The notes under the pieces were generated by a model. It was not told where the DNA came from. It did not search any database and saw nothing but the letters and a program-made list of their open reading frames with translations. A stretch of 63,930 nucleotides of DNA, counting the filler, from Hyphochytrium catenoides (taxonomy: Eukaryota > Protista > Hyphochytriomycota): the NCBI GenBank assembly GCA_900088475.1. It is 12 parts of 12 records of this genome, joined end to end, with 100 filler letters (N's around TTAATTAATTAA, not from the genome) between each part and the next. Parts side by side here need not be neighbours in the genome. Positions count along the whole stretch, not along the records: positions 24,699 to 50,309 come from FLMG01000114.1; 11 more parts are not named here. One strand, 5' to 3'. Position numbers and translations under genes: made by a program. The first letter of the stretch is position 1. The number at the start of each line of letters is the position of its first letter. Below, piece by piece: positions 1,675-49,877 of the stretch.

Positions 1675-2130
1675 TTTCTCTAGAAGTAGAAAGGGTACGC
1701 CAGTTTTAACTGCAGAATCGTAATCTCCGCGAAAAACTGGGTGTTCCGGTATTTTTGACAGTACTTTTGACAGAATGTCAAAAACCGTCCTCCAAATGGT
1801 GTCAAAAAAGGTATATTGCACACCGCAAACTGGTATAATTGATACGCTTTTGTGAATCAAGAGCTTTGACTGTCAATTCACAAAAGTGTCAAATATGGTC
1901 AATTACCGTCAAATATCCTGTCAAAGATGGGGACAATTGACAAAAATTGGCGATAATTGACCCAAAGCTGGTATTCACTCGTTGGGTGTGAATTGACAGC
2001 TGGGGATGGTAGTGCAATGGTCTTCGGTTGCCGATCCTGGAGGAGCGTTGGACACTCCAGGGGGAAGCTTGATCTTGATTCTTGGTTTGGTTGGTCCAGA
2101 GTGCTCGCTGAGGTCCTGGAGGGAGCGTGA

Positions 2131-2371
2131 GGCGATAACCTGTAATAATGTATGGGGTATGAAGACACTCCTATGTAGGTTACGTGGTCTACTGATATGG
2201 TCAGAGTGAGTATGAAGGGCTTATGGGACCCTGTTTCCTAGTTATCACGTTGTCTAGTTATCTGCAGAGTAACTGTCTCTCGTATAAACTACCTGACTCA
2301 GTTACTACTTCTTGAGGACACATGACTTCCTTACGGGATGATAATAACCGATTTATCATAACTCTGAAACA
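2131..2371 (-). mobile_element. Probable 5' LTR (2141-2371) and primer-binding site (2131-2140) of the copia element
   Basis: Minus strand reads TGTTTCAG...TATTACA followed directly by GGTTATCGCC, which resembles the copia GGTTATGGGCCC-type PBS; it lies upstream of gag in the same orientation. Confidence 0.55.
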
Positions 2372-2613
2372 CTTTGTTTTGTGCCTTCTTCTTCCTCTCG
2401 TCAGATAGAGTCTGGAACTGTGAGCCTTTTGGAGCTTTTGTCAGCTTCTGCTCTCAACAGTGCGTCATCTGCCCCGATATTGTCGCCTCCTACCTCTCAA
2501 CGAGCCCTCAAGATTCTGAGGCCCGTTCTTATCGACTGCCCCAAAACTGGGCATGACGCATTTGGGGCAGTCCAGATGGTGCCCCAAACGGGATTTGGGG
2601 CACTACGATAAGA

Positions 2614-2713
2614 NNNNNNNNNNNNNNNNNNNNNNNNNNNNNNNNNNNNNNNNNNNNTTAATTAATTAANNNNNNNNNNNNNNNNNNNNNNNNNNNNNNN
2701 NNNNNNNNNNNNN
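2614..2713. other. Artificial contig-joining spacer N44-TTAATTAATTAA-N44. Further copies at 8833-8932, 15918-16017, 24599-24698, 50310-50409, 52647-52746, 54471-54570, 56381-56480, 58548-58647, 59901-60000 and 62636-62735
   Basis: The same 12-mer with stop codons in all six frames, flanked by 44 N on each side, occurs 11 times; genes are cut abruptly at these points. Confidence 0.98.
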
Positions 2714-5700: not shown

Positions 5701-8096
5701 CAGGTACCGGCTAGTGTGGTCGCTCTGTACATTGTTCGCCGTAGCCCCTTCCCCACAGCCAGCTTCTCCACAGCCTTTTTTCCCTCTCTCTCTCTCGCCG
5801 GCGTGTCGCTGCTTCTCTCGTCTCTCTTTTTGCTCTCTCTCTTCTTGTGTCGCGGTCTGTTTTTTCTCGTTTGCGTCTCCCTTGTCGCCCTCTATCTCTT
5901 TCTCTCTCTCTCTCTCACACACACACTCTCTAGATAGTACCAGTTGAGCATATGCTGTTCTCCTTCTCTAGTCCTGATTCAAAGCGGTTCTTGTTGAACG
6001 CTTTGTATACGCACACTCCGACGCTAACTCTGTTCTTATAGATACGGCGGAAGGCACTCACTCTTCTGAACGGCAAAGTGGAGTCTAGCAAGGATCATCT
6101 CTCAAAGGAAGAGGTGAAGCTCTTCCTTGATATGGTGCCTGGCTTGGAGGAGATTCTTCGAGAGAAAGACGAACAGTCCACCATCAATTTGCAGACGTCT
6201 CTTCTGTCTCTTGATGTTCTAGCCAGAGCTTTCGGGGAGAAGCATCCTGCAGCCTTTGTTAAGGTTCTTCCTGCAATAGTGGGCTGTGTGGATGTCGATT
6301 CTGTCTCCCTTCTTTCGCCTGCGGTGGCCGCTGAGAAGCGAGATAAGATAGGAAGGAGCAAGAAGGAGGTTGAAGAGGAGACAAAGGAGGAGAGGAAAGG
6401 ACAAGAAGAGAGGCTTCAGTTTGTGGGCACAGCCTATCTGTGTCTTTCCACCTTGAGTGCCAAGCTTGGGCCCAGACTGTTTCCTCATCTTCCAAAGTTC
6501 TTCCCTAAACTGATGGAACTCCTAGAGTTCGCCTCAGGATCCGTCCCCTTAGCATCTCCTCCGTCCGCTTCGATGGGAGGAAAGAGACAAAGGGAAGGGA
6601 GAGGAGAAGAGGTGAAATTCTCCGCGGTCTCTTCTTCGAGACTCGTGCTCTTGAGAAGCTTGCTCATGACAGTCGCAGAGGTCTCTCGGCACCTGCCACA
6701 GTTCCTACCTCCCTACCTCCGGAGGCTTTTAGCCTGTCTTCTCTCCCCAGAGCTTCTCTCTATCCCATCTCTCTCGCCACACATCACCGCTGCTCTTTCC
6801 TCACTAAGCCAGGGAATAGAAGTTCGCCACCTTATCCCCGCTCTCACTAACGTCTACGGCACTCTTACTCGCCGAAGAAGTGAGAAGCATGGAAATCAAG
6901 AGAACCACGAGCCGTCCAGCGAGAGAAGAACGAAACAGGGAGAAGAAGCCGCTTATGGACCCTCTTCTGCCCGTCTTTTCTCTCTCATGGGTTCTGTTAT
7001 CTCTGTTCTGACCAAGCCAGAGCTTCAGACTCACTTCAAGCCTTTGGTTGGCTTTTTCGTCGCTGCGTTTGATCATCGTCGGAGATCTGCGAACCTGCAG
7101 ATCTCTGCGGAACAGGTCCAGAGCAGTGAAGATGCCATGATTGAGGCGTTTTTGAGCTTTATTCTGAAGCTCAATGAGAGGCAGCTGAAGCCATTCTTTC
7201 TGAAGCTAATTGAGTGGATGCGAGCGCCCCTTAAGCAAGGAATGCTAACAGCGGAGACAGGAGGAGGAGATATACATCGGAGGATCACCTTCTTCCGGGC
7301 ACTTCTCTCCCTCGTGAAGCGACTGAAGTCTATCATTGTGCCCTATTTCGCCTTCATCATTGACGATATCGTCAGCTGTCTCACTTGCACCGTACGACCG
7401 CAAGCTGCGGAGAGAGGTCCAGAAGCGTCAGACAGCTCCGAGGCAGAGAATGGCAATGACTTCTTTCTGATGAACGGCAAAGAAGAAGGAGAGAGAGAGG
7501 AGCCGAAGTCCAAGAAGCGCCGCTACATGTCGACGGGTAAAGACCTGCAGAGAAAAGAAGGAAGCAAGAGAGAGGAGTTGGTACTTCTTCTTCAAAGTAC
7601 CATCCTTCGCTCATTGCAGGAGTGCTTCTTACATGACACCGGAGCCGCACAGGGCGGATTTATAGACAGAGAGCGCTTCCAGGTCCTCCTTTCTCCTCTT
7701 CTCTCTCAGCTTGACGTCGCTGCTCTTTGTGATACTCAGGATGGAGGAGAAGAAGAGAGAGAGAAAATTAGGACGCATGTGCAAGAGAATGTTGTTCCTT
7801 GCCTTGCACGTTTCGTGGCCTCTGTGGGAGAAGACGCAGCGTGGAAGCCGTTCCACTTTTCTCTCCTTGCTAAAGGAAGAGGAGAGAATGCAAGGATTCG
7901 ATGGGCCTCTCTTCTCTCTCTTCGTGAGTGTTACCGCGTCGTTGGTGAGGAGTTCCTCTCTCTTTTACCAGAGAGCATTCCTTTCCTGGCTGAGATGTTA
8001 GAGGATGACGATGACGAGGTGGAGAGATTAACAAGGAAGGTCATTGAGGAGATCGAAGAGCTCTCAGGGGAGAAGCTAGATCAGTACATGGAGTAG
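2714..8096 (+). CDS. HEATR1: HEAT repeat-containing protein 1 / U3 snoRNP protein UTP10, 5'-partial. Exons <2714-3981, 4235-4370, 4483-4797, 5125-5703, 6042-8096
   Basis: All introns are GT-AG and phase-compatible; IRRKALTLLNGKV; BP28CT-like segment (FILKLNERQLKPFFLKLIEW, RRITFFR, LKSIIVPYF); C-terminus GEEFLSLLPESIPFLAEMLEDDDDEVE...IEELSGEKLDQY. Confidence 0.93.
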
Positions 8097-8721
8097 AGAG
8101 AGTCAACTCCAGCCACACTGCAGAAGGCCACACAGAGAGAGAGAGAGAGGCATGCTACGCTATTGGAAGCACAAAGAGGAAAAGAGAGAGAGAGAGGTAC
8201 GAATAGGTGGCCACAGAACTGCTAGTGGCTCGACGAGGATCGATCGCGGCTTCATGTCCTATAAGACATTATCTATGCCTTGTACAATAGAAAAAAGCTT
8301 TGAAAGTGTAGACAAAGATTCTTCCTTCGTCGTTCATCAAGAGCAAGGCTAATTGCTGACAGAGCACGACAGACACCAGGAGAGGCTTAGTCTCTGCAAC
8401 TCCTCTTCGCTTGGCACACGGAGCCATCATGGTCGATGAAGGAGAGAAAGCGCGTGTGACGACACAACGGAAAGTCTATTGAGAAAGGGCTGTTATTTCA
8501 CCCTTGGCAGCCCCTGGGTCGTCATTTCTAATGAATAAATAGCTGAAGGATGGGCTCGCCTCAACCGTCACACGAGGCTACAGATAGAGGCGGGTGTGAC
8601 AAGATGAAGCCCTAGGAAAGGAGGCTCATAGAGGGCAAGAAGGAGAGAAGGAGATGAGGGAGAAAGAGCTTGACGGAAGTAGAAGGAAACGTTGAGAGAT
8701 AAAGCTCGAAAGTGGACCACG

Positions 8722-8832
8722 CTAGAGCTTCTCTAACTCTGCCAATATTCTCTTCTCTTCTTCTGTGTATCCCTGAGCTGGAGCCTTTGCTGCGGCTGGA
8801 ACTCTGTGAGACGGAACCGATGCGCCCGTCAT
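8722..8832 (-). CDS. Possible last coding segment of a convergent gene (Snf7/ESCRT-III-like tail?)
   Basis: Open from the contig edge: ...VPSHRVPAAAKAPAQGYTEEEKRILAELEKL*, a Pro/Ala linker plus acidic terminal helix; only 36 aa visible. Confidence 0.3.
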   Translation of the reverse strand: MTGASVPSHRVPAAAKAPAQGYTEEEKRILAELEKL

Positions 8833-10534
8833 NNNNNNNNNNNNNNNNNNNNNNNNNNNNNNNNNNNNNNNNNNNNTTAATTAATTAANNNNNNNNNNNN
8901 NNNNNNNNNNNNNNNNNNNNNNNNNNNNNNNNCTTTGCAAAGTAACCCGAACCAAAAAAAATCTCTGCAGAATAACCCGAAACACTTTGCATGGACTTAT
9001 TATTGCGGAATCGGACAAAATGTGATGGGTAACAATAAGAGGCCCAACATCTCATCATCAACTTGTTGTTGGGCGGGCCGCAGCAGCAGCAGGGCGCCTC
9101 CTTTGGTCGTCAAAAAGCTTCCTGCTGCCTCGGTAGCTTCATTCAACAGGACCTGTGTGCCATTGTTGGAGGAAGGGCGGCCTTACTACTGGGCTTTACC
9201 TCAGACAGCGCAAACTCCTCCTCCGGGTGACACACGATAACAAAAAATTGCCACAAACACGTATTGCAAAATAACCTTAACTAAATAGCCATCCTTTCAA
9301 CGACCGTTTCCGTGGACACCTCTACAAATGATTCCGACGCCAAGGGTCAAAGCCCATAGCCTTGATGTGCAATTCTTGGGACAAAAAGGGGCTGATGCCA
9401 TGGGCTGCTGGGTGGCAAATTCTGCATTTTTTGAGATTCACCCTCCACACTCTTACAGCATAGGAGAAGAAAAAGTAGATGCATGCGGTGGTGGTGGTGG
9501 TGCTAGCTAGACACCAGGTAGGCAAGTCCATTGTTGGACAGAAACTGGTCCCTTTGCACCCAGGTTATCTTTAGGCTGCTGTCAACAACAGCACGTGCAG
9601 AAGTGAAGGCAACAATAATCCTTATCATCTGTCATCTTCGTTGCTGGTCAGTGAATCTTGCAGAGAGTCAAAAATGTCTGCAGTGCCTTTCTTCTTCTCT
9701 TTCCGTACTACTCATCAAGAGTATCTCAGAGACCAGCTGGGCGCCAAAGAGGAAGAAGGGGATAACGCAACCAGAACATCCTTTGAACAAGACGGCTGGC
9801 ATGTAATATTTATTACTCTTCCTGTGACCCAAAGGCTGACAATGACCGTGTGGTCTTCTTGCAGGCTTTGGCTGGGGTTGACATGAAGGAAAAGTGACGA
9901 TGGCAGGCAGCACTTTGACATTGCTGAGAAGATATAATAGAACTATGGATCTGTGAAGCTATCTGTGATGATGATGAAGATTCATGTCTTCTGGAGATGA
10001 AGTACTATTCGTTTGGGGGGACAGCCGTTTCTTTAGGGTCATGTTGTAGGAGCTTGCTTTACATTTCGGAGAGCTATCGTCTGTAGTGGTGATATTCCTG
10101 ATGAAAGAGCATATGATTCCCAATATTGTGTGAATTGGAGGCTGTGACCTTTTGGAGAGTTCAAAGCCAAGCGGCAGACTCTGACGAAGCAGCACAGCAG
10201 CCAGCAGGACCCGACAGCATACTGAGGAGACCACCACACTATGGGCGGGCAAGCAGACGATCTTGACGGAGCTTGTTCTTGAAGATCTGAACGACTGCCT
10301 TTGGCTCTGATGATATTATTCTTAAGTGGAGCAGAAAAGACTATCCGATGCTGATAGGCCTTTGTAAGGAATTGAAGCTGATAGGCCTTTATAAGGAAAT
10401 GCTTGAAGTGGCATCGTATGAACTTGTGGCGCTGTAAGGCGGTGGGGAATGGGGAAGACCGAAGATGGCGCTGACATGAAGAAGGTCCTGTATCTCCTCC
10501 CTGCCCTCTGACTAGGCAGTTCAGCTCCAACGCC

Positions 10535-13500
10535 ATGTCACAGCATATCCAACAGCAGTTCACAGTTGTTAGAAGAACCCGTTGTTTGCTTCTCTTCTGC
10601 CTAGCTCTGTATGGGACAGTCTTAGTACCGCAGGTCATAGCTGATGGAGGTGGATGCGCAAATAGGTGCAGCGGACACGGAACCTGTGGCGGGGCCAAGT
10701 AAGTGTTCCCTCTCCCTTCATCACGGCTATTCAGCTTTTTCATGACCTCATATGATGCTGTTTGAACTCCGTGCTGCAGTAAGTGCATATGCGACCCGGG
10801 TTATCGGTACGCCCAAGACTGTTCACAAAGTAGGCTCAATCTTGATATTGCAACGATCCGCTACCTTGATACCACGTTTGCACACACTAACTCTTCTCTC
10901 ACATCAAACAACCACCATGTCACTCCTCTTTCTTGTAACAGGGGAGTGTCCTCGCGGGCCTGCCTGGTTTGATAAAGCTTATGATGTGGGCCGAGCGCAT
11001 TCTCTCCTTGAGTGCTCCAATGCAGGGATATGTGATCGTAAAACTGTAAGCGACTTAACACAAGTTTTCACAAATGTTGCGACATCCTTATCGTTGACTG
11101 TGTAGGGACTGTGTTCCTGCTTCCCTGGCTACACTGGGGCTGCCTGTCAGAGAAGTAAGGACTGCCATCGATACTTCAATTGGTGATGTCTCCAACGTCT
11201 AACAACTTTTTGAACGCCATCATCAGCGCATTGCCCCAATGACTGCTCCAATGCGGGATCTTGCCTTAGTATCAGCGCTGTTCAGGCCGCACTTAGTCCA
11301 GTGACAGCTCCTGCTTACAATCAGTGGGACGCTGATTCGTCCTTCATGTGTGTCTGTGACTATGGATATTCGGGACCAGATTGCTCCTTAAGTAAGTGTT
11401 CAATGAAACGCTGACCCATTTGTTGAGTTAGCTTGAGCAGATTTGTTTCTTTATACTCTCTCTTTCTGTCTGCCTTTCGCCCTGACATCCCGCGTGTAAT
11501 ACAAAATATCCTCTGTTTTATCGGCCTCTTATTTATATCTCCATGTCTTGACTCTTCCCCGTTCCATCTGTGTCTGTTCCACTTTGATCAATGTTACCAA
11601 GAGCTGTGCCCCAAGGGTGATGATCCCCTGACACTTGGCATAACGCATCGGGCGATAAGAATCATCACTGATGGAACACCCGGCCTAGAAGGCGAATATC
11701 GCTTCTACTTCAATGGATTCCAAGTCTCATTTTCAGCCGTCACGACCGGGACGACAGACGCGGGCTGCCGAAATCTTTTCGAGGGTCTCGATAGTATTGA
11801 AAGCCTTACCTGCGTAGTGGATGACTCTGACATGACGGCGGTCAAGTTCACCCTCACCTTACTGACATTCCCAGGATCATCGGTGGAGAACAACCTCTTC
11901 TTTCATGACGGCAACCCCCCGCTCTCCGCCTTCGCTTGTGACAGTTCTAATGTTACGGGAGGAAGCTGTACGATAGAAGATATAGCTCCTGCTGACGGTT
12001 ATGGTAGGAATTCATGCTTACAAGATAATTGAAGGACACAGCTTCCCTCCTTCGTCCAGTCCTTCGCAAAGGATCACTCACATATAACGCTTTATCTTCA
12101 TCTAGAGAATATGCTGTGCTCGGGAAGAGGTATCTGCGACTTCAATAGTGGCCAGTGCGGCTGCTACCCTATGTACTCAGGAAGCGATTGCACTTCCCAG
12201 ACAAATCTGGCAGAGACCTCTGATACTTCAGACGGGTTTGTTATCAACCCTCAAACGTTACTCTATGAGGGTAACGCGCTCAGGATCGCGACTACTAGAG
12301 GCATTTCCCCTGCCTTCAATTTTTTGTACATCGAGGCAGCGTCGTCACCCATCTTCACTATATCTGGGGAAGGGGACATAACCTCCTACACAGGTATAGT
12401 GGTCATGGCGATGGCCTATTGTTGCTGGGCCATTAGTTAACTAACCAGTTGCAACGACTACCATCCTCTTCTACCTGGTAGGGGACTTCGTAATACAATC
12501 AGGCAGCGGATACTTTGAGACGGGTCTCACCGTGAATACTGGAGGTTTCCGAGTTAACGAAGGCGGCGGGAAAATAGTCTCCCAAGAAATTCTGGAACCC
12601 TCTCTAGAGGTTCACACTTTGGATGCTGGGAGCTTGTTTGCAAGCTCAACGCTAAGGGTTAAGGCAACCACCTCCAACCCTGTGCCGTTCAAGCTCATCG
12701 AAGTAATTACAGAGCCCGCGGTCTTAACCCCACCGCCCCCTACCCCTATCTTTGACATTCTGACGGATGGAACAACCACTGTGCACATAGGACTGTTTCA
12801 AGTTTTGACTGGAGGCGGTTCGATTACAAGTAAGGGTTCTCGCTATATATAAGAGGAGTCGGGCACCACTACCACGGTGAGCGTTAATTCACGTCTGCGC
12901 TGTCGGGACAGGTACAAGAGCAAACCAACCGGCGTTGGCGGTTCAGGCGACGTCAACATTGTTTCAAGACTCTGTTTTGACAGTTTCATCAGTCAGAAGC
13001 ACGCTAGGGACGACGTCGGACTTCAGTCTCATCACAGCCTCTTCTGCAGCTGGCCAGACTGTTTTTGACGTGGGTGCCTCGGGCTCCACCACAATTGACC
13101 AGATAACTGACACACTAGATGGTCTTACTATCAATGCCCCGTCTGCCGCCTTTACGGGACACTTGATCCGGACGGTAGCGGTCCAATCGACATTGCCGTT
13201 TTACCATATGCGCTGCGAGAGCCGCTCCGGCGGTACACCATTTGATGCATTTTATGTTACTGGGACAGGCAGTGTCTACACTGACAGCTCGCTTCGAGTG
13301 GAAAGTGGAGGAGCTTCCATTGGCTCTGGAGGTAACAAGAGTGATATCTTCTTCGGGATTGGCAACTATTACGAGATGGAATTCTTAATATCTTGATGCG
13401 TCGTGTCCTCTTCTACTACTTTGATGCTTTTTTAGAGGTACTAAGTGATGTACTCATGTAGGCCTTTTAGTCGAGTCCGGCGGGGCGACTGTGGAAAGCG

Positions 13501-24598: not shown

Positions 24599-25078
24599 NN
24601 NNNNNNNNNNNNNNNNNNNNNNNNNNNNNNNNNNNNNNNNNNTTAATTAATTAANNNNNNNNNNNNNNNNNNNNNNNNNNNNNNNNNNNNNNNNNNNNTG
24701 GCAGAGAGAGAGAGTGGGAGAAGAGAGAAAGAGACAGAGAAAAAGGGGGAAAGAGAGACATGGAAAAGAGAGAAAGAGAGAGAGACAGAGACAGAGATAG
24801 AAAGTGAACAGAAGGAAGAATAATGGCGAACAAACAGCCCTGGTTAGTCCTGAGCACGCTGATCTGGTGTGGGTAGAGGTTCAAAAGTCTTCCACCGCCG
24901 GCAATGCAATCGGCAAGAAGGCAACGTCAAGCGTTGAGAGGGGAGAAAAGGGAATAGAGGAGAAGTGCTGCTCTTTCTTTCTTCTCTCTCATAATCCCAT
25001 CCTGGTGGCTAGCTAACAATCCACATTTCTAATCTCCTAGCCTCCAGCTTCTTTTCATCCCATTCTAGCTCTTCTTAC

Positions 25079-28000
25079 CTTGAGAAGATCCACATCCACG
25101 TCCGGCTCTCCGCACACAAATCTCTGCAGCTCTGCCCAGGAGCAGAGGGAGAGAAGCTGAGACGGGATAACCTTCGAAATTCCTCTTAAAATAGCGTTCA
25201 GATGCTCGTCGCTCTCGTGAAGACGCGCTTCTTTCACAAGCTGGACGTACTCCTGACGGTTTTCCTAAGAAGAGAGAAAAAGCTCCTTGAGAACTCTCTC
25301 TCTCTCTCTCTGCCCACCCCCGTCTCTGTGTCACTTCTTGCTATCCAACCCAGAGTGAAGAGAGAGAGAGACAGAGAGAAAAAGAAACACCAGCAGAGAA
25401 TATGTCGAAAGACATCGCGAGAAAGAAGGCAGGACTGAAACAGAAAGGAACGAGATGCAAAAAAAAAGTCACGTTCAAGAGGGAGAGAGACATGCATAAG
25501 AAGAAAGAGAATGACAATGAGAGAGAGAGAGTGGGAGACAGAGAGACACAGAGAGAGACGACACGACGCGAAGAGAGAGAGAGAGAGAGGAGAGGAGAGG
25601 AGAGAGAGAGAGTAATAGAGAGCGATAGAGAGTGAGAGAGAGAGTAATAGAGAGAGAGAGCAATAGAGAGACAAAGAGAGAGAAAAGACAGGCAAGGTGC
25701 CCTTTGGTCTTACCTTAGTCACTGGGATTTGTGACCCGTTCGGGATCAAGTCTATCGTGGTGTTGTCACTGAGAAGTGTAGTGAAGGTCTCGAACATGCA
25801 CTCCTCGAACACCTGTGGCTCCACTCCCTCGATAAAGCGAAGAGAGTCACAAAGAGATTGATCAATGCCTTCTAGGTCACTCTCTGAGAAGGGCTGACCC
25901 ACCAGCGCCTTCCAGAAGAGCGGGGGAAGAGAGAGAGAGAGCTTTACGCCTGTCCGCAGACAGCAGCCAATGAGAACCCCGACAAACTCATAAACCTCTA
26001 GGAGATCTGTCCCCGCAGAACTTGGTCGAGGAAGAGAGCGGTCTCTATTCTCTCCAATATTAGCCTTATTATTAGGCGTAGGGATAAAGAGAGACGGGGT
26101 GCATCGGACCATCTCCTGTGAGACGTCGTGGAAAAATTGTCGATACGGTCCACCCTCTCCAACCACGTTCTCTCCTTGGAAGACGACCTCAAAAGCAATG
26201 AATGGATCGGCTGCTCCTTTAGGACGCGGGAGGCGCAGCCCAAGAGAGCTAACATTACGCAGCTGTTCAAAGGCTGCACCGAACATAGAGCTGTCCAGGA
26301 GAGAGCACTCCTCTGCAGCAAAAAGATAGCAAAGAGGAGAAGAGTCAGAGAAGGGGCTGCAGCGCGGCTTCGGGGTCGCGTAAAAGAGAAGTCTTCTTCT
26401 TTGCCTCATAGAATGCAGGCGCAGAAAGCGAGGGCGGTAGAGAGAGAGAGAGAGAGAGTGGGACAGAATGCTGACATGAACAGCAGAGCAACTTGAAAGA
26501 AGCGGAGGAGGACATGTTTCTATGGAGATGCTGTCACGGAGGAGCCAGAACTCACCGTCTTTGTCTCTTAGCGCAGCAATCTTGAGCCTGTCCAGGGTCA
26601 CGACAGGCCTCTTCTCTCCCTCCATGGAGGTCTTGTCAAGGATTTGGTTCCAGAACTTGAGCTTCACCGAGGTGAAGACCAAGGAGCGTACCTCCGCCAG
26701 CTGCCCAGACAAACTCCCAACACTCTCCACAGCCTTCATGTCAATAAGCGGCAGCGTAGATGAGAGAAGAGAGTTTAGACGCTGAATAGCCAGGAAGCGG
26801 AAGCGCAGGGAGGCAAGTGGGAAAGAAGGAAGCAGGGAGAATCTCCTCTCTTCTTCTCTCCCTCGAGGCCGTCGGATGTGCCCTGGAGTCAGCTCCATCG
26901 GTGAGATCATGCCCTCCTCTTGACAGATGAGAGACGCCAAGGCGACCAGCTACAGAGTACGACATAGGATAAAGATACGTCAGAAAGTGACACGGATGAG
27001 ATATGTATAGAGAGAGAGAGAAAAAGAGAGAGAGATGGGAGGCAACATGGCCATGCAAAGAAAGGAAAGACTATACTTCAGACTGTTCAACACCCAGCAA
27101 GCCCAACTCTATTAATGGTCATAGGCCACGCTCGGCACTATACCTGCTCGTCCATTCTTTTCGTCCACGCCATCTGCATCCTCGAGGCCTCTTCCCTAGA
27201 GGTAACGCTAACCCTCTCCATGCTCAGATCGTAGCCTTCACCTTGGATCCACTCATAGAAAGACATAGCGTCCTCCTTAAGCAGATCACGCTTCGTCCGA
27301 ATGAAAGCTTGCTCTCTCTCGCCAACAACTTCTTGGTCCTGGCTCCTCTTCTCCGTAGTAGGGGCAACCCGCCTCCAGTATATCTCTCTTAGTCCCTCGT
27401 CTATCTTCTCCACCTGTCTCTCTAGGATGCCTCGTAAGCAGCTAGAGAGTTTCTTATGCCGTGTACCACGACTTAATAGCTTCTCAAGTGGACGAATCCG
27501 CAAGGTACAAACCCTTGCAGTTGACGCACTGACCGTGGCGTCTGGCGCTTCCTTCGCCTCTACTGTCTCTAGCGACGAGGAGGCACTTGGAGTTACTTCT
27601 TCTTGCTGTCGTGGGGGCTCCTGAGGGCAAGGCGTCTCGCAGATGGCGCAGGCAGAGTCTGCCCAGGGGTTGAGAAAGGTGCAAGCTGGGCAGTTCCAGC
27701 CTTCCGCGGAAGTATCCACCTCTTCTGCTGTGACCACGTTCTCCTCTGCCCCTCCTTTCCCTTCTCCTTTCTGCTCCTCCGCTGCCGAAGCCTCTTGGAA
27801 GATGCCCTCTAACTCTTCGTCAAATGGCGCTGGACCCCCACTAGCATGGTCTTCCTCTTCCTCACCAACCTCCATGTCTATGTCTTTGCTTGACAGTATC
27901 TCTACTACGTCGGGCCTACCAGCATCAACCACTGCATATCCTAGAGCTCTTCCCTCTTCATCACATGGGAGGAATAACACGTTTGCCCGACAACCAAACT

Positions 28001-31000: not shown

Positions 31001-34000
31001 CAAGCTCTAATAGCTGCTGCAGGAGACGCGGCTGGCTCTGGAATGACACAATCACCCAAAAGAAAGAGGACAAGGTAACATGAGCCCCAAGGAAGACATC
31101 AAACAAGCTCAAGGATGTTAGATAAACATAGGAAAAGGAACAGCATAAGCCATAGCAAATGGGGTGAACAGAAGCCCTAAGAAGAGAAAGCGGGAAAGAG
31201 AACGGGCCGTACATGCAGTGTCTCGTTATTGCTAAATAATGAGTCTGCCCAACAGGGCAGAAAGTAGTCCAACGCCTTCATTCCTCGCCAGCTCAGCTCC
31301 GTCAGAGCTGCATGTGCCAGAGTAGAGAACACAGCGGAAGGTGGAGAGGTGATAGCGCCAGATTCGTGGCGGAAAGAGCTGCGAACCTCTTCGACGTAGC
31401 GCTCTGACGGTTTGATCCAGTCGCTCCGTAAAGCCAGTGTGAGAGCCTGGAGGGTCTCTGAGGTGAGGCGAGGGAAGGATAGATCTGGAGAAAATTCTGG
31501 AACGGGGAAGATCTGTTTCACGTCCACGATGACCACACAGCGCTGACTATCTTTCTCAGCGGCGCGACTTGCTGGCGGGCCAGCCTCTGCCGTCACTGCA
31601 ACTTGGGCACCCGAAGGAGAGGCAGAAGAAGAAGAAGAAAGAACGACGTGCGCCCTGTCGCTGAACTGTTGGAAGGCAATCACCTTCCCAGTCTTGCCCT
31701 TATTCGCAGGATCCATGAGCTTTACGCTTCCGCCTTCTCTAAGAGGCTCAATAAAGCCGCCTAGAACAGCAAGAGTACCTACCAAGCGGCAGTAAAGCGC
31801 GGGATCTCTCTCAACGACCGCAGCGACGGAGGAAGCGGAGCTTAACATACTGATCTCTCTCAGTCCCTTCATCACTGTTTCCCTTGTCAGCCTAGACCAA
31901 GCCTGGAGTTCTTTCTTCTCTCTCGGATCCTCCGAAGCCCCTCTCAGCAGCCAGCGCACAAGAGCTATCATCTCTGAAGCAAACGCTGCACTCGCTCCGA
32001 AGCTCTTTTCTCTCTCCTTTGGGAGCCTCTCCTCATACTCCTCGAGCATTTTATTCCTGAGCTGCACAACCTGGGGCTCTGCATCCAGTCCAGCCGTTGT
32101 AACCCCACTCGCAGGCTTCTCCCGCCTTCTTGGGTCTTCCTCCTGACCTGGCGGACGAGGAGACAGAGAGAGAAGGCACTGTAGATCCTCCCAATTCTCT
32201 TTGGGTACGACGGCAACACTCAAACCAACAGAGGCAAGCCTCTGCCCAAGAGAGAGGCATTCATCCTCAGCCCCAATGCGATAGACTATCGCCCCATCTG
32301 TGTACAGATGAGAGATAAGAACACCGACCTTCCACGCAGTCGAGCCCGGAGGCGCGGCCTCGGGGACAGGACCTCCTCCTTGTGCTCGCGAGAGAAGAGG
32401 AAGTCGTTGGCCGCTTGGCTCTTCTATCAGGAAGAAAGGGTGATCTCCGTCGTGCACCAAGCCTTCATAGCAGGTGAGACAGAGATCATAGTCTGGACAG
32501 CTTTGGCACTTATAGCGCGGTCCTTCTAAGGGACTAGCGTTGCACCCGTCACAGCGTACGCCCCTACAAGTACATGAGAGAGGGAAAGAAGACGTTGAGC
32601 ACCTTTTCAAGTAGAACCGCAGAGGAAAGTAAAAGGCTAGAAGGAGGGTGAGAGAGATGAGCGTCTAGTTGGCTAGTAGATGAGTCAGACGGAATGAGCC
32701 GAACAAAACCGAAAGCGGGCTCCCCAGTAAAGAGACAGAGCACAAGCAGAAGATATCCTTTGCCCCATAGAGATGTGTCTCTGTTACCTGTGGGCAACTT
32801 TCCCTGCTCCTGCACGGGGCTTCGGTTTCTCCTTCTCGGCCAACAGCTTGGGATCTGGAGTCAAGTCAGGGCGAAGTGGATCGCCCTCAGCCTCCAGAAG
32901 AGAGATCCATCGCTCGAGAGGGAGATCAACGCCGTTGTGAACAACAACTGCAAACGAACTGGCGCTCTCTGTCACGGTCTCCGCCTGCTCCTCAGCATCT
33001 CCTCTTCCTACACGCATAGCATTACATGCCTCTCCTATCGAAGAGAGCAATAACTCCAGCAGCATGCTAGGGGAGCTTGGGAATGAAGAACGGATAGGAG
33101 AAAGTGAAAAGAGCTGCAGGCTCTCCTCAGTGGCTGGACCTTGCCCTGCAAAAGCCTCTCTAGCCAGTCTCACAACTATTAGTTGCGTGTGGGACGCAAA
33201 GAGAGAATTGTGGACAAGAAGAGAGAGGAAGAACGTGCTCCACTTCTCTTTGCCCAGTGCCCTTTGCACCGCGTTAGCCTTGATATTCGCTAGAAGAAGC
33301 TCTAGATACCGGGCAAACGTCATCTCATCAAAGGTCGTTCCTCCGTCGCCTTTCTCAGCCTGCTGAGTGTTAAGAGCTGTGGAGAACAGAGAGGAAAGGA
33401 TGCTGAACATCGCGTCAAGAATGTTATCTTCCTGTTTCTCTCGGGAAGAGAGCTTCATTCTTTCCTCAATGGTCAATTCGGATGTCTCTCGCTCTCTCCC
33501 GTGTCGTCTCGAAGACGAGAGCCAGCAGATTTTCATGAATAACAGCCCCACAATAGTCCAGCGACTGTCTCTCAGCAGCAAATCCGTGTACTCCACGTGG
33601 TCTGCCATTGGAAACAACTTCAAACGGCTAACTCCCAGCGAACGAGAGGAAGGTTGAAGAGGAGGTGAGGAGGCGAAAGACACGAGAGAAGAGAGAAGGT
33701 CGCTGTCCCTCAAAAGTGCTAGATCTTGCACCCGGAAATCAATGGCAGCGACGTCCGATGCAGCTAAGACTCTTGAGAGCAGCGGAATGCGCTCGTCCAC
33801 CATAACAGAGCGTAGAGAGCTCAATAGCTGGCAGAAACTGCGACGGGAGAGACATGGGCAGAAGGAAGGTAAGGAGATCCCAAAGAAAGAGAGTGTGAGC
33901 GGCGAAGAAAGGGAGAGACCGAGCAAATCATCGCTTTCTCCGAAATGGTTGCACATTATGATGGAAAGAACGGAAGATGTATCTAGCGCAGCGATGTCCG

Positions 34001-37000: not shown

Positions 37001-40000
37001 AGATGAGAGGGTGAAAAGGCAATTGCACCTTCAACAATGCCAAAAACGCAGCTTTGGATGGAGCCGAGCAGCTTGACTAGAGGCGAAAGAAGGATTGGGA
37101 GGCTCTCCCCTTTCTCTGTATCGCCTTCTTGATCTCTGTCTCTCCCCTGGTCTGCAATATCAGGCCCAGACGGTCCCGCCAAAGAGTCCATCGCTTCCTC
37201 TTCTGCTCTTTCGAGCAATTGAGCAAAGAGGGCAAGGCCTCTATCCTCGAAGATCTCAGCACGGCTAAGGCCGAAGAGCTTACAAATCGTCTCTGGAGAG
37301 CCTGACAGCCAAGAAAAGTATCTACATAGAAATTTATGACGGGTCTCCCGCTTCTCCTGTCCCTCTTGAGAAGTGCTATCTAGGTGACGGGGAGAGGATG
37401 ACGACAGTAGCTCCTTCAGCAGCCTTAGCTGCTCATCTTGAGACCGACAGAACAAGCCAGCACTTAAGCCCCGGAGATATGCAGATTGTGACACATGAGT
37501 GGCCGGGCCGGGACTTAAAGCCAAAGACAGAAGTGGCCGCCCATCCAAGTCGAGTAGGCTCTCTAGCAGCTTCTCATGGCCCTGGGTCACTGCCAGCTCC
37601 TCCAGCTGAGCGTCCAGCAACTGCAACAGGACTTGAATGGCGTAAGATTCCAGAGTGGTTCCTTTGGCTCCCGTTTCTGGACTCTCGTGCAGATTCTTTT
37701 CTACCCGACTTGGTTCCTTTTCTTCCACTAACTGGGTTGATAGTCCTATCCTTCTCAGCATCTCTTCGTTGTCACTTACTCTTTGGGTGAGATTGCGCAA
37801 TGCCCTGAAGATGGCTTTGAAGCAGCCAACACTCAGCTCTACGGAGTAGCGCACCTGTAGCACTCCTACAGCTGACTCAGGGAGACGGAGAGCCTCCTCC
37901 AGTCTTCCCTGCATGCTGTTGATCTTTCTTCGGAGAGGGAGACTCTGCTTCTTGATCCCAACAGAGCTCTGCCAGCTCTCTTCAAGAATAAAGAGAAACC
38001 TCTCGATGCAGCGAGTAAGTGAAGGCTCTCTCTTCTGCAATGCTCTCTGATGCCTTAGTCGGTCTACCTCCGAGAAGAAAGAGAGTAGCAGACCGGTGAA
38101 AGGAATGGCAGAAGCAGGCTCTTCCTTTTCCAAAGTTGCCGAAAGGTCTGAGAGGATAGAGTTAACACTGAAGGCCCTGAAAGAAGATGGCGTGGGAGTG
38201 TACTCGACACCTTCGTGGGCGAGCCAGCAAGCTATCAGTTCCGTCGCCATCTCTTCAGAGAGCTGCTTACCGCCTTCGAGGCTGTCTTCCTCCCCTGCGG
38301 GCTCAGGAGAATCTGCGGTCTGGGCAGGAGACGCTTTGATTATGTCTTCAACTGTGCCCTTAGGGGTGGAACCGTGGGTTGAAAGGGAGAGGTCCTCAGG
38401 GTCTGCTTTCGTCTCTTCAATTTTCCCTTGCTTCTTCGCTTCGTTGGTAGCCTGGGTGGCCTTGTCTGGCTCTTCCTTTGGCTCCAAAAGCCGCTTTGCC
38501 TTCTGAAGGCCGAAGCCCCTTCGTATAAGGGAAATGCGCCTGTCGAGGATTTGTGGTGGAACCATCGTCACTCCCTTCGGAACAGTCTCTCCCCTGCCAG
38601 GGCCAGAGTTGCAGAAAGCCTGGAAGGTCCCGTCCATAAGGTTGTATGCCCAGAGAGAGTCGGTTTTATAAGAGTAGGCCATTGAAGTCCCAGCCACAAT
38701 GCCAAAAGAGGGAGACAGAGGGACATCCCCTAAAAATTGGCCACTTGGCAGACCGAAACACCGGGCATAGTGGGACGAGGTCGAGGAGGAAAGAGGAGGT
38801 GACGGAGATAAAGCTGAGAGAGATCCTGACGGCAGGAGAGCTATCAGCTGTGGGCCCGTGCAGTAGAAAGTTCCTGTGGCAAGCAGTCCGGGCTCTAGAA
38901 TGGGCTCTCCTCCCTCTGAATGGAGCTCGATGAAGGAGACGAGAGGAAGATAGCGGCGCGGAGACGCTGCTTTTAAAGCCTGAAGAAGCACCTCCGCCGC
39001 TCTATTTAACTCATAGTTTGAGAGCTTTAGCCCCTCTTTGCATCGCACAGAAGAGAGAGACGGAAGAGCCTCTTGAAGCCTCCTCTCTAAGGCCCTGATC
39101 TCAGTCTTCCCTAAGGTTGAACGTACTTGAGTGAGGAGGGATGAGAGGTGCTTTGAAGACTTGACAAGCGCTAGTGCGGTCGCTGCAAACTTATCTATTG
39201 TCTCCACCACAATCCACTTATTCTCCCCGTCCGCCTGCAAAGCCTCGAGAGAGATATTTTCTCCTATGGTCAAGAGTAAGAAAAAGAAGAAGGAAGAGAG
39301 AGGGAGAGAGAGAGAGTCTATTTCAGCGCTCATATTCATGAAGGGATCGACAAACAAAAGCTTTGCAAAAGAGGTAGATTAGAGAAGAGACACGTGAAGA
39401 AGGGCAATAGACCGGTGCATCTTACGAGCAAGGCACACCATAGAAAGGCGTTGGAGCAAAAGAGATGTGAGGCTGAGCTCTACCTGTTAGTGACTCTACA
39501 AAGGACTGAAGGGCCGCAGGAGACACAATCTCCTCGGTTATTGGACTGCCAGCCTCTCCTTGGCCGTCAAGGTTGCCCAGCACCTCAGCCNNNNNNNNNN
39601 NNNNNNNNNNNNCGTTCCCATCCTCATACACAGCGAGGATGGTAGCCTCCTCTCCGCTGTCCAAGATCGCTCTATCCCCTACATGCCATTCGCGTCTCTC
39701 TCCTACTGGCAAAACTGGACTCTGTGTTTGCCTTGAAAGCACAGGAACGTTCTCAAGTCTTCTTCTCGACGAGCTCTCCTCCTCACTCTCTTTCATCTTT
39801 TCCTGTTCTTTCTCAGAGCTAGCCTCTGTCTTGATAGTGCAGGTCTTAGAGAAGCAGTTCTGGCACAAGTCATAGTCACACGTATCACAGCGGAAGCGTC
39901 CCTCTTGCCATCCGCCCGAACATCCTGCCAGGCCTCCATCACAGCTCCAAGCAGTCTGAAGTGACGATGGGGCCAGAGGATGGGGATGGGAAGACGAGAA

Positions 40001-42790
40001 GAGCTGGGAGACTTTAGAGACAGCGATCTCCAGCTTCCCTTGAGATGGAGAAGATGAAGAACCTCCTCCTTCTGGGGCGTCGTCTAGGTCATCTTCTTCC
40101 TCAAATTCATCAGGAGGAAGCTGTGCTATTTGGGAAGGGTCATAGGTGTAAAGAAGGAAAGAATAACGCAGGATCTCCTTCTCCCTCTTGCTCTTCGCAG
40201 GGAGAGGGAAACGATTCGCAATCTTTCCTCCTTTCTCCTCTATAATGACCAGATCATAGCAGTCCTCGGCGCCCCATCTGTACGTGTTGGTCCTGTCGTT
40301 CTTGTCCCATCTTACCGTCACGCCTACCTTCTCTACTCCTCCCCATGAGCCAATCTTCTCCACCGTCCCGGGCGCCCCAGCTACACCATCCTGATCTCCC
40401 CACTTCCAGTCTGGGCCCCTAACCACCCGGCTTCCCACCTGCATGACAGCGCGAGGGTCTGTCGTGCTTTCTCTCTTCCCATCTCCCCCCGAGGCATGCG
40501 AGACAAAGGTTAGATCATAAAAAAGCCTTCCTCTCTTCCCTGGTACCCCCCAGCGGTACGTGTTGGACCCACTGGCGTCCCACTTAACGCTCACTCCCGT
40601 TCCCATCTTGCCTCCTGCCCCCCATCCTCCAACTTTCACCACTGTCCCAAGCTTGCCAGCACCTCCGTCCTGGTCTCCCCATTTCCAATCGGGCCCTCTC
40701 ATCACCCGCATCCCCACCTCCAAGGCAGGCATTGCAGAGCCCGTGCGCTGGCTTCTCCTCCTTCTCCGTCTATCTCCTGTATGTTGCGTGTCGCCGATTC
40801 TCCCTCCTGGCTTGTGCTCGTCTTTGTCTATGTAGGAGATAAGGTAGAGAAGATGCCCGTCGGAAAAGAGAGGGCAGATCGAGCCAGAATGGCTGACAGG
40901 GGCTGCAGAAAGTGTAGAACCCAGCTCTAACGTTTGAACCACAGTCAAATCCTCAGTGCAGATTTGGTCAAGCTGAGAGGCCACCATGGAAGAGCTTCGG
41001 CAGTAAAGAAAGCCCTGAGCATAGGCCAGCCATACTCTTTCCCCTCCACCTCTCTCTCTTTCGGACCGGTAGTCTTCATTGCTCGCATAGACAAGCCCCT
41101 GCACCGTGGAGAAAGCTCCAGTCCCCACCTTCAGCAGGCCCCTGCTATTGTGTATATAGAGGTACTTGCCATCAGTGGCTAAAGCGTCGCACGAGGAGGT
41201 GGATGAGGAAGACAGAGAGGATGGAGGTTGTTCAAAGCAAAATGAGGATTGTGCGCTGGCCTCTACAGGTACCGCATAGCCCTCTCCATAACCGGCCGAG
41301 TGAAACTTCCGGGCAAAGGAAAGAAGAGCATGAGCATGAGCTTTTACCGTCCCGGAGGAAAGAGAAAGATCGGTCGTGTAGGGAAGAATGCGAAGAAAGA
41401 GGTCAAGACCACATATAAGGAGATGAGGAGAGCCGGTCAGGACCCCTAGTCCAAAGAGTGCGGTCCCTATCCCAAAAATGAACTCCACGGCGTGCGGAGA
41501 GAGGGAGAAAGGCCGTGTCGCCTGCTCATCCTGTTCACTCTCGCCACGGTTCCCCCTGTTTATAAACATTGAGAACGTTAGGGGCCATCAAACGTCAGCC
41601 CAAGACGTGAGGGACAGAAAGACTGAGGGGTGGATGTAGGAAGAAAGACATATATGTAACGAGAGGAGAAAGGTGCAATCCTCAATAAACTCCAGGGGCG
41701 AAAGTGCTGGAGGTGTACGAAGAGCCACGTGGAATAGAGAGACGACAAGAGAAAAGCACAAACAAAATTGAAGAGGGACAGAGGGAGACACAGAGACACA
41801 CAGAGAATGAGAGAGAGAGAAATAGAAAACAAAGAAGAGAAAACTGGGGGGAAGAGAGAGAGGGAGAGTCAGGAGAGAAAAGTGGGGCTTGGTGTAAAGA
41901 GAAAAGTTGTGATTGAGGTCAGGTCATCCCACGACTTACCCCAATCCGAGCCGTGCCGCCAAATCCAGGCACTCCTGCACAAAGGCATCCAGGTTGATAG
42001 GATCATACCGAAGGGAGAGAGGCTCCAGCTCGCTAAGCCTTGCCAAAAACTTGTGCAGGTTCTCTGGCTCCTCTTCCCATTGCTGTGGGTTCCTCCCTAT
42101 TATCGACGGCCAAAGACGTGGACCGGGAATGTCGCTTTTGTCCAGCGAGTACGCGTCTGCAGTCCGCCAAGCGTGCTCATCCTAACCCAAAGAGAGATTC
42201 CAAGGGACAAGGAAAGAGAAGAAGAGTTAGACCAAGAAGGAGAAGCATTGACGTCCAAGACAAAGAAGAGAAGACTTGAAATGACGTACTTGATGCAGAT
42301 GCTCTTCCCCTCTTTGTGCCGGATCTACCATGTCAGCCACCAGTGAGTGAAGGACAGCGCTTCTTTTCGCTAGCAGAGTCGTCTGCTTCTCTCTTGCAGA
42401 TTTGGCAATGCGATCTATCGCCTCCAGGCAGCATCTACGAACCCTGTCTCTAACTTCGGAAGAAGGATCAAGGAGGAACTCCTTGAAGATATCGTCGAAA
42501 GGGGCTGGCAAGGAAACTTGAGATCCTTCTCCGGCATCTGTCTTCTTCTCGTCGTACAAGGAGCTTTTGATGCTTGCACTTTTCGAGCGATGGGAGAGAC
42601 TAGCATCGCTTTCCCCATTACCTTCTAATAATTGGCATGCCTTGGTAGAGTGAAAATACTCATGAAACATTACGCCGTCGTTGAACAAGACGACGTCAGA
42701 AAGGCGCCGCAGCTTCTCCCAGCTCTGCTGGTTGAAAGGCACTGCCTGGGCGTGCCCGCAAACCGTGGGCGGCGCCTTTGTCCGAGCCAT
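25079..42790 (-). CDS. Giant HECT E3 ubiquitin ligase (HECTD4/HERC2-like), 3'-partial, at least 4810 aa. Exons 42790-42290, 42181-41940, 41555-39484, 39263-37029, 36720-34533, 34265-34026, 33837-32788, 32563-31213, 31037-30537, 30291-28996, 28718-27144, 26949-26556, 26312-25714, 25264-25079
   Basis: 13 phase-compatible GT-AG introns. HECT N-lobe ([61 protein letters not shown]); 2x MIB/HERC2 ([15 protein letters not shown]...YRWG) at 40247-40723; ZZ at about 32430-32563; degenerate ZZ at 39851-39949; NZF at 27624-27698; VESAHPY module. The catalytic Cys lies beyond the contig end. Confidence 0.92.
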
Positions 42791-46877: not shown

Positions 46878-47648
46878 TTAGTCTTCATTCAAAGGCTCTG
46901 CGGCCGCCATCTCCAGCGCGCACTTGATCACAGTCATTACGTGGTCTGGGTAACTAATTTGTAGGGCAAGACTGTGGCCGGCATCGCTCATTTTCTTCCA
47001 GGTCTTCGCGAATATGTTGGCCAGTTTGTCTGCGTCGCCTTCTAATCCATCCACAAACTTAGCTGACTGCTCCTCCAGAAAGACTAGGCAGGCTGCATCC
47101 TCGAGGGTTTGCGCTTCCTCGTCTGTCTTCAGGTTCTTTTTGAGGACCAAGTCTCGGACTCGCGCCGCAAAAGGAGCGTCAAAGCCTGCACCCAAGATGA
47201 TCTCTTCTGCTCGCTTTCCTTGCCGAATCTTGGCGTCAGTCCGCCATCTAAGATAGCCTTCTCGGGTCTTGGGATACGAGTCTCTGGGCAACATCCAGCG
47301 CTCTAAGTGCTGGCATCTACCAGCGAGGCGTAGACCTATTGAAGGCTTGGGATTGAGGCGGTGAATCCACTTCATGATGCTTTGACTGTACACCACCTCC
47401 GCACCAACATCTGAGTTGTCTCCGGCCGAAACTCTGGTTGGGTCCTGGTTGTGTGCAGCATCGATCAGCTGATTCAGAGCTTCCTCTCGCTGCTGCTGCT
47501 GCTTCTTGTCATCAGTCTTCTGTCGTCGGCGTCTTCTCAGCATCACAATCCCACCAGCCACCAGCATCACAGAGCCAGTAACCAACAGGGGTCCCAATAG
47601 ACGATAAAAAGAGGAGACGCGGAAGTGATTCGTCCCATGGTTGGCCAT
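46878..47648 (-). CDS. DUF4202 family protein with an N-terminal transmembrane anchor, intronless
   Basis: IDAAHNQDP, LRLAGRCQHLERWMLPRDSYPKTREGYLRWR, KKNLKTDEEAQTLEDAACLVFLE, KTWKKMS match DUF4202 motifs; hydrophobic LLGPLLVTGSVMLVAGGIVML followed by RRRRR. Confidence 0.85.
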   Translation of the reverse strand: MANHGTNHFRVSSFYRLLGPLLVTGSVMLVAGGIVMLRRRRRQKTDDKKQQQQREEALNQLIDAAHNQDPTRVSAGDNSDVGAEVVYSQSIMKWIHRLNPKPSIGLRLAGRCQHLERWMLPRDSYPKTREGYLRWRTDAKIRQGKRAEEIILGAGFDAPFAARVRDLVLKKNLKTDEEAQTLEDAACLVFLEEQSAKFVDGLEGDADKLANIFAKTWKKMSDAGHSLALQISYPDHVMTVIKCALEMAAAEPLNED

Positions 47649-48036
47649 GATCTCACCTTTCACGCGACAGCTTCCTAAGCACTAGTAGTAGTACCACCAC
47701 CCTACCACCTCACGTAGCACTGAGCGCGCTTGCCTGGCCTAACTAATAACGAGGAAGAAAGGGCAAGCTAGTGAAGGCTGAGAGGCGTCTGTGAGTGAAT
47801 GAGAAGAGTGTTGCGCGGCAACCACCATCTGCAGATGAGCAGAGGAGAGAGAGAGGGAGAGAGAGCTGCAGAGAAGGGAGAGGGAGAGAGAGAGAATCAG
47901 CAGCAGCAGCACCAGGAAGAAGCTGAACCTCAAGGATTCTGATGCTTCCTTCCCCCTGTCGTCCCCCCGCCAATTCTAGCGGCTAACCGCTTTTTCTATT
48001 TAAGGCGCTAACGACTAGGCAGTCGCGGATGTGTGT

Positions 48037-48050
48037 TGAAGATACGAGGC

Positions 48051-48087
<37 letters not shown>

Positions 48088-48118
48088 TCTGAGAGAGAGA
48101 GAGAGAGAGAGAGAGAGT

Positions 48119-48150
<32 letters not shown>

Positions 48151-48347: not shown

Positions 48348-49086
48348 AGCCGGTCCAGGTACTAAGAGAGTAGCCATAGAGGAGCAGCGTCAGTCCAGAT
48401 ATTATAACTCTTCAGGGACCAAGACCAAGAGGACCTCACACCCTGCAGCCGCAGAGTTTGGTGCCAGACCCTGAGAGAGAGAGAGTGCAGGGAGAGAGAG
48501 AGAGACACCCGTCATTGAGCAGGTGAGAAGGGGCACGAAAGGAGGGCGAACATATTGAACAGGAAAACCCGACGACGTTCAAACTCCCTTCCTGAAGTTA
48601 ATCCGAACGGTGAAAGCGAGGAGAGAGAAAGGAGAGGCAACGAGACGCTGGGAGAGACATTGGGGGAGAGAGACAGAGAGATACAGAGAAAGTGAGAGAG
48701 AGAAAAGGCATCGAGACTCATCATCTGTCAGGGATGAGCTTCTCCCTTGCTCTTTGGAGTGGAAGACAGACCCAGAGCGTTTGCTGGACGGTCGGCCGGC
48801 TCTCCGGAAAGAAGGTTGTTTAACTGTCCGGGCTCTTAGTAGCCAAGCTCCGGCGTCACTTAGTCCAGATCTCTCTCCTTCCTCTTTTGGTTCTATATGC
48901 TCTGTCTCTCCATCTTCATTCTTACTCCACATTACTTGTCACCTCCTCTTCCTCTCTCTCCCTCTCTTCTCCATCTCTTTCGCACTCTCTCCTTCTCTCG
49001 GCCCCACTCTTCTGCCCCTCGCTTTCCCCTCCTCTCGGTCTCCGACTCACTCTCCTTCTTCTATTTCTCTCTCTCTCACTCTTCCT

Positions 49087-49117
<31 letters not shown>

Positions 49118-49154
49118 CCTCTCTCTCTTTCTCTCTCTTTTTCTCTCTCGCTCG

Positions 49155-49190
<36 letters not shown>

Positions 49191-49417: not shown

Positions 49418-49471
<54 letters not shown>

Positions 49472-49507
49472 GCTTTCTCTCTCTCTCGTTTTTCCCTTCT
49501 CTCTCTG

Positions 49508-49548
<41 letters not shown>

Positions 49549-49877
49549 CTCTCTCCCGTTTTTCCCTTCTCTCTTTCTCTCTCTCCCACCCGGTCTATTC
49601 ACTTCCCTTCTTCTCGCTCCCTCTGAATCTTGCTTCGTTTTCTCTGTCTCCATCTCCTATTGACTCTTTTATCTTACTCGCTCTCCCTCTCTCGAATGCT
49701 TTGAATTCTTGATGCTTGTAAGCCTCTCTGTCTCTCTTCCTTCGCCCATATGCTTTTCCCTTTCTCCACTCTCTCGCTCGCACTCTCATTCCCACTCTAA
49801 ATCTTTCGATCAATTTAACTATATGTCTTTCTCTTTGCCTTCCTCTCTCTCTCTCTCTTCCCCTCTCTCTCTCTTTT

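Follow-up and report, generated by a model that had tools for sequence, protein, structure and literature searches.

A ZZ zinc finger nested in a predicted ClpS-like fold: a candidate N-terminus-reading module in a protist family of giant HECT ligases

In a 63,930-nucleotide stretch of DNA from Hyphochytrium catenoides (assembly GCA_900088475.1; 12 joined genome parts, called the window here at its full length), the part that comes from FLMG01000114.1 (positions 24,699 to 50,309) carries on its minus strand part of a gene with several exons, whose product is identified by sequence comparison as a giant HECT E3 ligase. The predicted protein contains a ZZ zinc finger placed between two flanking segments, and structure prediction supports that in relatives these flanks fold together as a ClpS-like domain with the finger inserted in one of its loops. 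Its family is conserved among protists, and the domains follow one another in the order MIB/HERC2, ClpS-like fold with nested ZZ, RanBP2 finger and HECT. By analogy with known readers of protein N-termini an N-recognin function of the module is plausible, and we give about an even chance to the proposal that the ligase reads its substrates through it, in which the ZZ would read N-termini and the ClpS-like half would act as a scaffold.

The ZZ finger and its reading frame

Reading the minus strand returned the N-flank, the linker, the ZZ finger, the second linker and the C-flank base for base at the positions in Table 1, just as a preliminary description of this DNA had given them, together with their intron. 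Exon A closes at 32788 with KVAH and the first two bases of a codon for Arg (the His codon being 32792-32790), exon B opens with GVRCDGCN, and the C-flank ends in SVAVVP at 32203. Removal of the intron from 32787 (GT) to 32564 (AG) keeps the frame between the two exons, and unspliced read-through meets an immediate stop (TAA, 32786-32784). Since the junction recreates a motif that is near-invariant in the family alignment described below (H-x-x-V-R-C-D-G-C, with the His as the last codon of exon A), we placed the intron here as a predicted splice supported by that alignment. One RNA run matched 7% of words, yielding only 31-mers and a 179-nucleotide unspliced contig at 32649-32827 that is probably DNA of a relative.

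The ZZ finger is genuine and scored far above chance (Pfam PF00569, 43.9 bits relative to a cut-off of 21.4, E-value 2e-11). All eight zinc ligands are present (C-DG-C, C-QS-C, C-LT-C and H-DGD-H, i.e., three CxxC pairs and one HxxxH), and direct reading bore out the earlier statement that neither CDGCN nor PDYD is disrupted, so that the residues holding the alpha-amino group are kept: the Asp of CDGC, the Asn next to it and PDYD, which in most relatives reads N-Y-D. The same description had called the finger p62-type, and this assignment has to be given up. Against sequences of solved structures in the PDB the best match was HERC2 (6ww3, E-value 4.6e-12), followed by MIB1 (4.7e-11) and p62 (~4e-9), and because its His ligands are spaced HxxxH the finger groups with the HERC2/MIB1 class and apart from p62. 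The HxxxH class includes HERC2, MIB1, ZZZ3 and dystrobrevin, whereas p62, whose L3 loop is short, is of the HxxH class (PMC12370974). By sequence, then, the finger is nearest those of HERC2 and MIB1, even though the p62/SQSTM1 ZZ (PDB 5yp7 and others) has CDGCN and PDYD motifs identical to those in the window. We also considered and rejected a UBR-box protein, as the zf-UBR profile (PF02207) gave only sub-threshold matches (0.02-0.18) overlapping the ZZ of the family.

A conserved protist family

An exhaustive HMMER search (phmmer) with exon B as query against 1.84 billion representative sequences returned many multi-ZZ proteins, as well as ten proteins that matched in a single long stretch comprising the ZZ and ~300 further residues at 30-36% identity; none of the representatives was a relative with more than 50% identity, and exact copies of the exon ORFs did not occur in the collection. 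The oomycete members are from Phytophthora, Nothophytophthora, Aphanomyces and Achlya. Full-length relatives have the same domain order as the window gene (MIB/HERC2, ZZ, RanBP2 finger, HECT), their HECT domains cover PF00632 from positions 3-23 to 301-304 of 306, and in two of them (P0032 and P0028) the RanBP2 finger sits at the equivalent relative place.

Alignments of about 20 members (21 rows in the Pfam check described below) showed conservation on both sides of the finger. Upstream, 35-55 residues before the ZZ, there is a hydrophobic strand and an amphipathic helix ending in G-E/D-P; downstream, the post-ZZ linker (LLxPRSKGGGxVPE ... GSKxWK) is followed by a helix, a Gly, a strand, a helix and a strand. 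Because the upstream, linker and downstream elements are conserved family-wide, the arrangement is ancestral to the whole family, which answers in the negative the question, raised at the outset, of a lineage-specific ZZ insertion, as far as the organism of the window is concerned. The first linker is variable and has a low predicted local distance difference test score (pLDDT) in the models. The second is one of the best-conserved stretches of the family, with R, P, G, S and W at almost invariant positions, yet its pLDDT is just 52-68. The second linker is covered by the MIB1 alignment, and part of it resembles the extension that follows the ZZ in MIB1.

The C-flank of the window protein is 39-41% identical to family members and lies within the single long phmmer stretches. 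For the N-flank, a family profile of the region before the ZZ ranked exon A first among the 526 open reading frames (ORFs) of the piece, with a ~200-fold lead and an E-value of 0.027 (hmmsearch --max), and hhalign against the family gave P 0.021, compared with 0.25 for the reversed sequence. Three methods agree on one collinear N-flank alignment, which ends in E-G-D-P just before the exon that encodes the ZZ. The N-flank also aligns without gaps to the beta1-alpha1 region of relative P0076, both having a loop after the strand that is one residue longer.

P0076 itself is an intronless 9.4-kb ORF (ENA ERZ23491423 scaffold_605, 2001-11357) on a very compact eukaryotic metagenome contig, close to genes for a UCH deubiquitinase and an LRR/F-box-like protein.

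Structure prediction for the flanking sequences

We modelled continuous segments of two relatives (P0017:217-423 and P0076:1333-1523) by AlphaFold with the family alignment. In the P0017 model the elements are E11-16, H21-32, the ZZ, H145-159, E161-167, H169-181, E185-190 and H191-201, with a flank pLDDT of 82-94; the P0076 model has the same order (E8-13, H20-30, with alpha4 as H176-182) and a flank pLDDT of 82-97, and in both the residues homologous to the window C-flank reach 84-97. The flanks of the relatives are thereby predicted to form a two-layer alpha/beta domain with the topology beta-alpha-[insert]-alpha-beta-alpha-beta, in which the ZZ occupies the alpha1-alpha2 loop.

When the models were compared with 48,161 PDB representatives using an exhaustive aligner, ClpS structures led other folds by ~4 Z units in both, with the entire ClpS core covered and 13-19% identity in the superpositions. 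The ClpS-fold references were PDB 9ayn, 7d34, 4yjm, 3o2o and 2w9r, and residues ~305-400 of yeast Ubr1 in 7mey. Foldseek against the PDB matched the ZZ alone, the ClpS match emerging solely with the exhaustive aligner, and the ESM Atlas returned no usable match to the C-flank by features and ZZ proteins only to the model by shape (template modelling score <=0.40).

What the module may do, and alternative explanations

The finger would capture a substrate by its free alpha-amino terminus, using the CDGC Asp, the following Asn and the acidic patch D-Y-D (N-Y-D in most relatives), a mode modelled on the fingers of p62, HERC2, KCMF1, PRT1 and BIG, all of which have solved structures with N-terminal peptides. 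The HECT domain would then ubiquitylate the ZZ-bound protein. The ClpS-like half would most likely be a rigid cradle or a secondary contact surface that positions the ZZ, a role we favour because the residues of the ClpS N-degron pocket are lost.

Several results weigh against this proposal. At E<=10, Pfam matched neither the window pieces nor any of the 21 alignment rows to ClpS (PF02617), and hhalign against E. coli ClpS gave nothing (P 0.64). A profile of the flanks alone, compared with 120 ClpS sequences by hhalign in local and global mode, gave P 0.29 against a narrow set (Enterobacterales, 75-99% identical, Neff 1.8). The window N-flank is only weakly family-like (P about 0.02), and a profile built from the N-flank alone did not match it (E-value 14). 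Within the pocket, the N-degron site is formed in E. coli ClpS by Asn34, Asp35, Asp36 and His66, and an alignment anchored on secondary structure and on the Gly between alpha2 and beta2, which infers the mapping without superposition, placed an equivalent of His66 (three residues before that Gly) in no family member. The suggestion that the flanks are the two halves of a split ClpS fold thus stands on the relatives' models and their ~4 Z lead, and finds no support from any sequence method.

Most members have x-[N/S/T]-[D/E] in the loop that follows beta1; in P0076 this loop is E-R-D-E-L-T-P, and in the window it is N-G-V-D-L-P, where N-G-V-D offers no acidic pair, in line with the early suspicion of a degenerate pocket. 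Judged from sequence, the canonical pocket is at best remodelled in the family and probably lost in the window protein. In ClpS the alpha1-alpha2 loop and the N-degron pocket are at opposite ends of the domain, so an inserted ZZ need not block the pocket.

The alternative that survives best is that the flanks are a generic alpha/beta platform that shares the ClpS/L7-L12 topology by chance, the ZZ being an ordinary interaction finger, like those of the MIB1 MZM module or dystrophin, whose ligands are partner proteins or internal motifs and not N-termini. The missing ClpS signal in every profile search would suit it, yet two independent models put the full ClpS core ahead of other folds, the finger keeps the alpha-amino-capture residues of p62 and HERC2, and UBR1 likewise pairs a binuclear treble-clef finger with a ClpS fold; we regard this explanation as possible but on the unlikely side. 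It is doubtful, to our minds, that the ZZ and a remodelled ClpS-like pocket jointly read N-termini and feed the HECT domain, which would make the module a working N-recognin of new build. A stricter version, in which such a pocket takes hydrophobic N-termini and the ZZ basic or small ones, transferring the two-site logic of UBR1 to a HECT ligase, would agree with the x-[N/S/T]-[D/E] loop of most members, but the family-wide lack of a His66 equivalent, the N-G-V-D of the window and the absence of profile similarity make it improbable. That the window's own flanks do not adopt the fold, either because the N-flank similarity is chance or because AlphaFold modelled the relatives wrongly, draws on the marginal N-flank scores, the shallow multiple sequence alignments and the modelling of relatives in place of the joined window sequence, but it is very improbable given the collinear alignment from three methods, the first rank of exon A among all ORFs, the clear homology of the C-flank and the convergence of two different targets on the same fold at high pLDDT.

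Relation to known systems

UBR1 and UBR2 offer the closest parallel to the proposed module, in that they combine a binuclear treble-clef finger that reads N-termini with a ClpS fold in one E3. In UBR1, unlike the family described here, the two domains stand in tandem with no nesting, a UBR box takes the place of the ZZ, and the ligase is of the RING type; the UBR box is itself related to ZZ-like fingers (PMC4506424). Compared with ClpS proper (PF02617), the family's domain has no detectable sequence similarity, does not keep the pocket residues, has its alpha1-alpha2 loop extended by a ~130-residue insertion (two linkers and the ZZ), and belongs to a HECT ligase and not to a Clp adaptor or RING N-recognin.

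The ZZ of HERC2 is not known to sit within a ClpS-like fold, and the HERC2 proteins matched have no Pfam ClpS domain on record. HERC2 otherwise shares with the family the HxxxH ZZ, its acidic residues, a MIB/HERC2 domain and the setting of a giant HECT ligase, and its ZZ binds histone H3 and SUMO1 at their N-termini (PDB 6ww3, 6ww4). We rejected membership in HERC2, as RCC1-like, DOC, CPH and cytochrome-b5 domains were found neither in the window exons nor in the full-length relatives. In MIB1 (MZM module, PDB 4xi6) the ZZ stands between two MIB/HERC2 domains of a RING ligase, whereas in the window it stands between ClpS-like halves; an MZM of the MIB1 type was rejected for the nested ZZ, since neither flank is a MIB/HERC2 domain. 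We likewise rejected a DOC domain downstream of the finger (no Pfam match, and the model is alpha/beta). Among solved structures the HECT of the family (P0032:4282-4616) was closest to HECTD3 (1.4e-39, all others about 1e-27). HECTD3 has a DOC domain, which the family lacks despite this closest HECT.

HECT ligases can carry an N-degron reader, UBR5 combining a UBR box with a HECT domain. With UBR5 and HERC2 as precedents, a HECT E3 with a reader of N-termini is not new by itself. What appears to be new is a ZZ nested in a ClpS-like fold, a fold of this kind that is invisible to sequence profiles, and a family carrying both; in the literature on ClpS or ClpS-like domains together with HECT and ZZ we found no description of the nested arrangement.

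Host gene and other features of the window

The giant HECT ligase context that the preliminary description had assumed was corroborated by MIB/HERC2 and HECT matches on one strand (Table 1), the former lying ~2,000 residues upstream of the ZZ module. Introns interrupt the rest of the HECT domain, which the piece edge at 24699 truncates, with an additional HECT-like exon at 25055-25237, and the catalytic C-lobe with its Cys falls beyond that edge. Pfam scans of the window exons found no RCC1, DOC, CPH or UBR domains.

Table 1. Predicted features of the HECT ligase gene, in window positions
Feature	Position	Strand	Evidence
N-flank (beta1 and alpha1 of ClpS-like fold; end of exon A)	32877..32954	-	sequence reading, family alignment
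Linker 1, Pro/Lys-rich; ends in conserved His codon and 2 bases of split Arg codon	32788..32876	-	
Intron, GT-AG, 224 nt, phase 2	32564..32787	-	family-motif junction, in-frame stop if unspliced
ZZ zinc finger, HxxxH class; CDGCN and PDYD acidic motifs complete	32425..32562	-	Pfam, PDB-sequence matches
Linker 2 (LLxxRxxGGGxVPE ... GSxxWK); partly beta-strand added to ZZ, MIB1-like	32329..32424	-	family alignment, MIB1 alignment
C-flank, alpha2-beta2-alpha3-beta3 of ClpS-like fold	32203..32328	-	family alignment, relatives' models
alpha4, extra helix following beta3 in relatives' models	32164..32202	-	models and alignment
Downstream block LGGFxEPLRxGG...	31639..31773	-	family alignment
Two tandem MIB/HERC2 domains	40241..40723	-	PF06701 2.4e-38, two stretches
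RanBP2-type zinc ribbon, weak	27624..27704	-	PF00641 E 0.0026, under cut-off
HECT domain, N-lobe part	25714..26124	-	PF00632 70.8 bits, 2e-19, profile positions 3-136/306

The downstream block (L-G-G-F-x-E-P-L-R-x-G-G ... G-x-T-G-x-V), ~130 residues past the ClpS-like module, is present in all relatives, and a Pfam scan matched it to no family. After the two MIB/HERC2 domains there is a degenerate ZZ/C1-like finger (W-S-C-D-G-G ..., 39851-39949, minus strand; ZZ E-value 0.008 and C1_2 E-value 0.0078, both under cut-off), and the order MIB-MIB-ZZ-like at 40723-39851 is reminiscent of the MIB1 MZM module. The large MIB/HERC2 exon contains a run of 22 N's (39591-39612), probably due to masking or to a gap in the assembly, whose length is not a multiple of three, leaving the downstream frame uncertain. 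A separate gene for a DUF4202 protein lies upstream of the ligase gene (46881-47663, minus strand; Pfam 1.4e-63). Long (CT)n/(GA)n microsatellites occur in introns and intergenic DNA (24703-24801, 25519-25683, 48054-48150, 49066-49190, 49419-49585 and others) and account for the S-L-S-L and E-R-E-R runs in ORF translations.

Implications

Known N-degron readers are a handful (the UBR box, the ClpS fold, the ZZ and a few others), and the field regards the ClpS-homology domain as confined to ClpS adaptors and UBR1/2-type ligases; in plants, reportedly, no E3 has a ClpS-homology domain (PMC12370974). A ClpS fold that profiles do not see, hosting a ZZ within a HECT ligase, would broaden the known range of these readers. 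If the module is a true N-recognin, it would be a third, independently assembled coupling of the ClpS fold to proteolysis, after UBR1-type RING ligases and ClpS-ClpAP, and one present in oomycetes and other protists. Should the ClpS-like half be merely a scaffold, the module would still be a clear case of domain nesting, with a fold recognisable by structure prediction alone. At ~200 residues it is compact, and hence directly expressible and testable with peptide libraries, and it would provide a candidate N-recognin for the oomycetes, a group that includes major crop pathogens.
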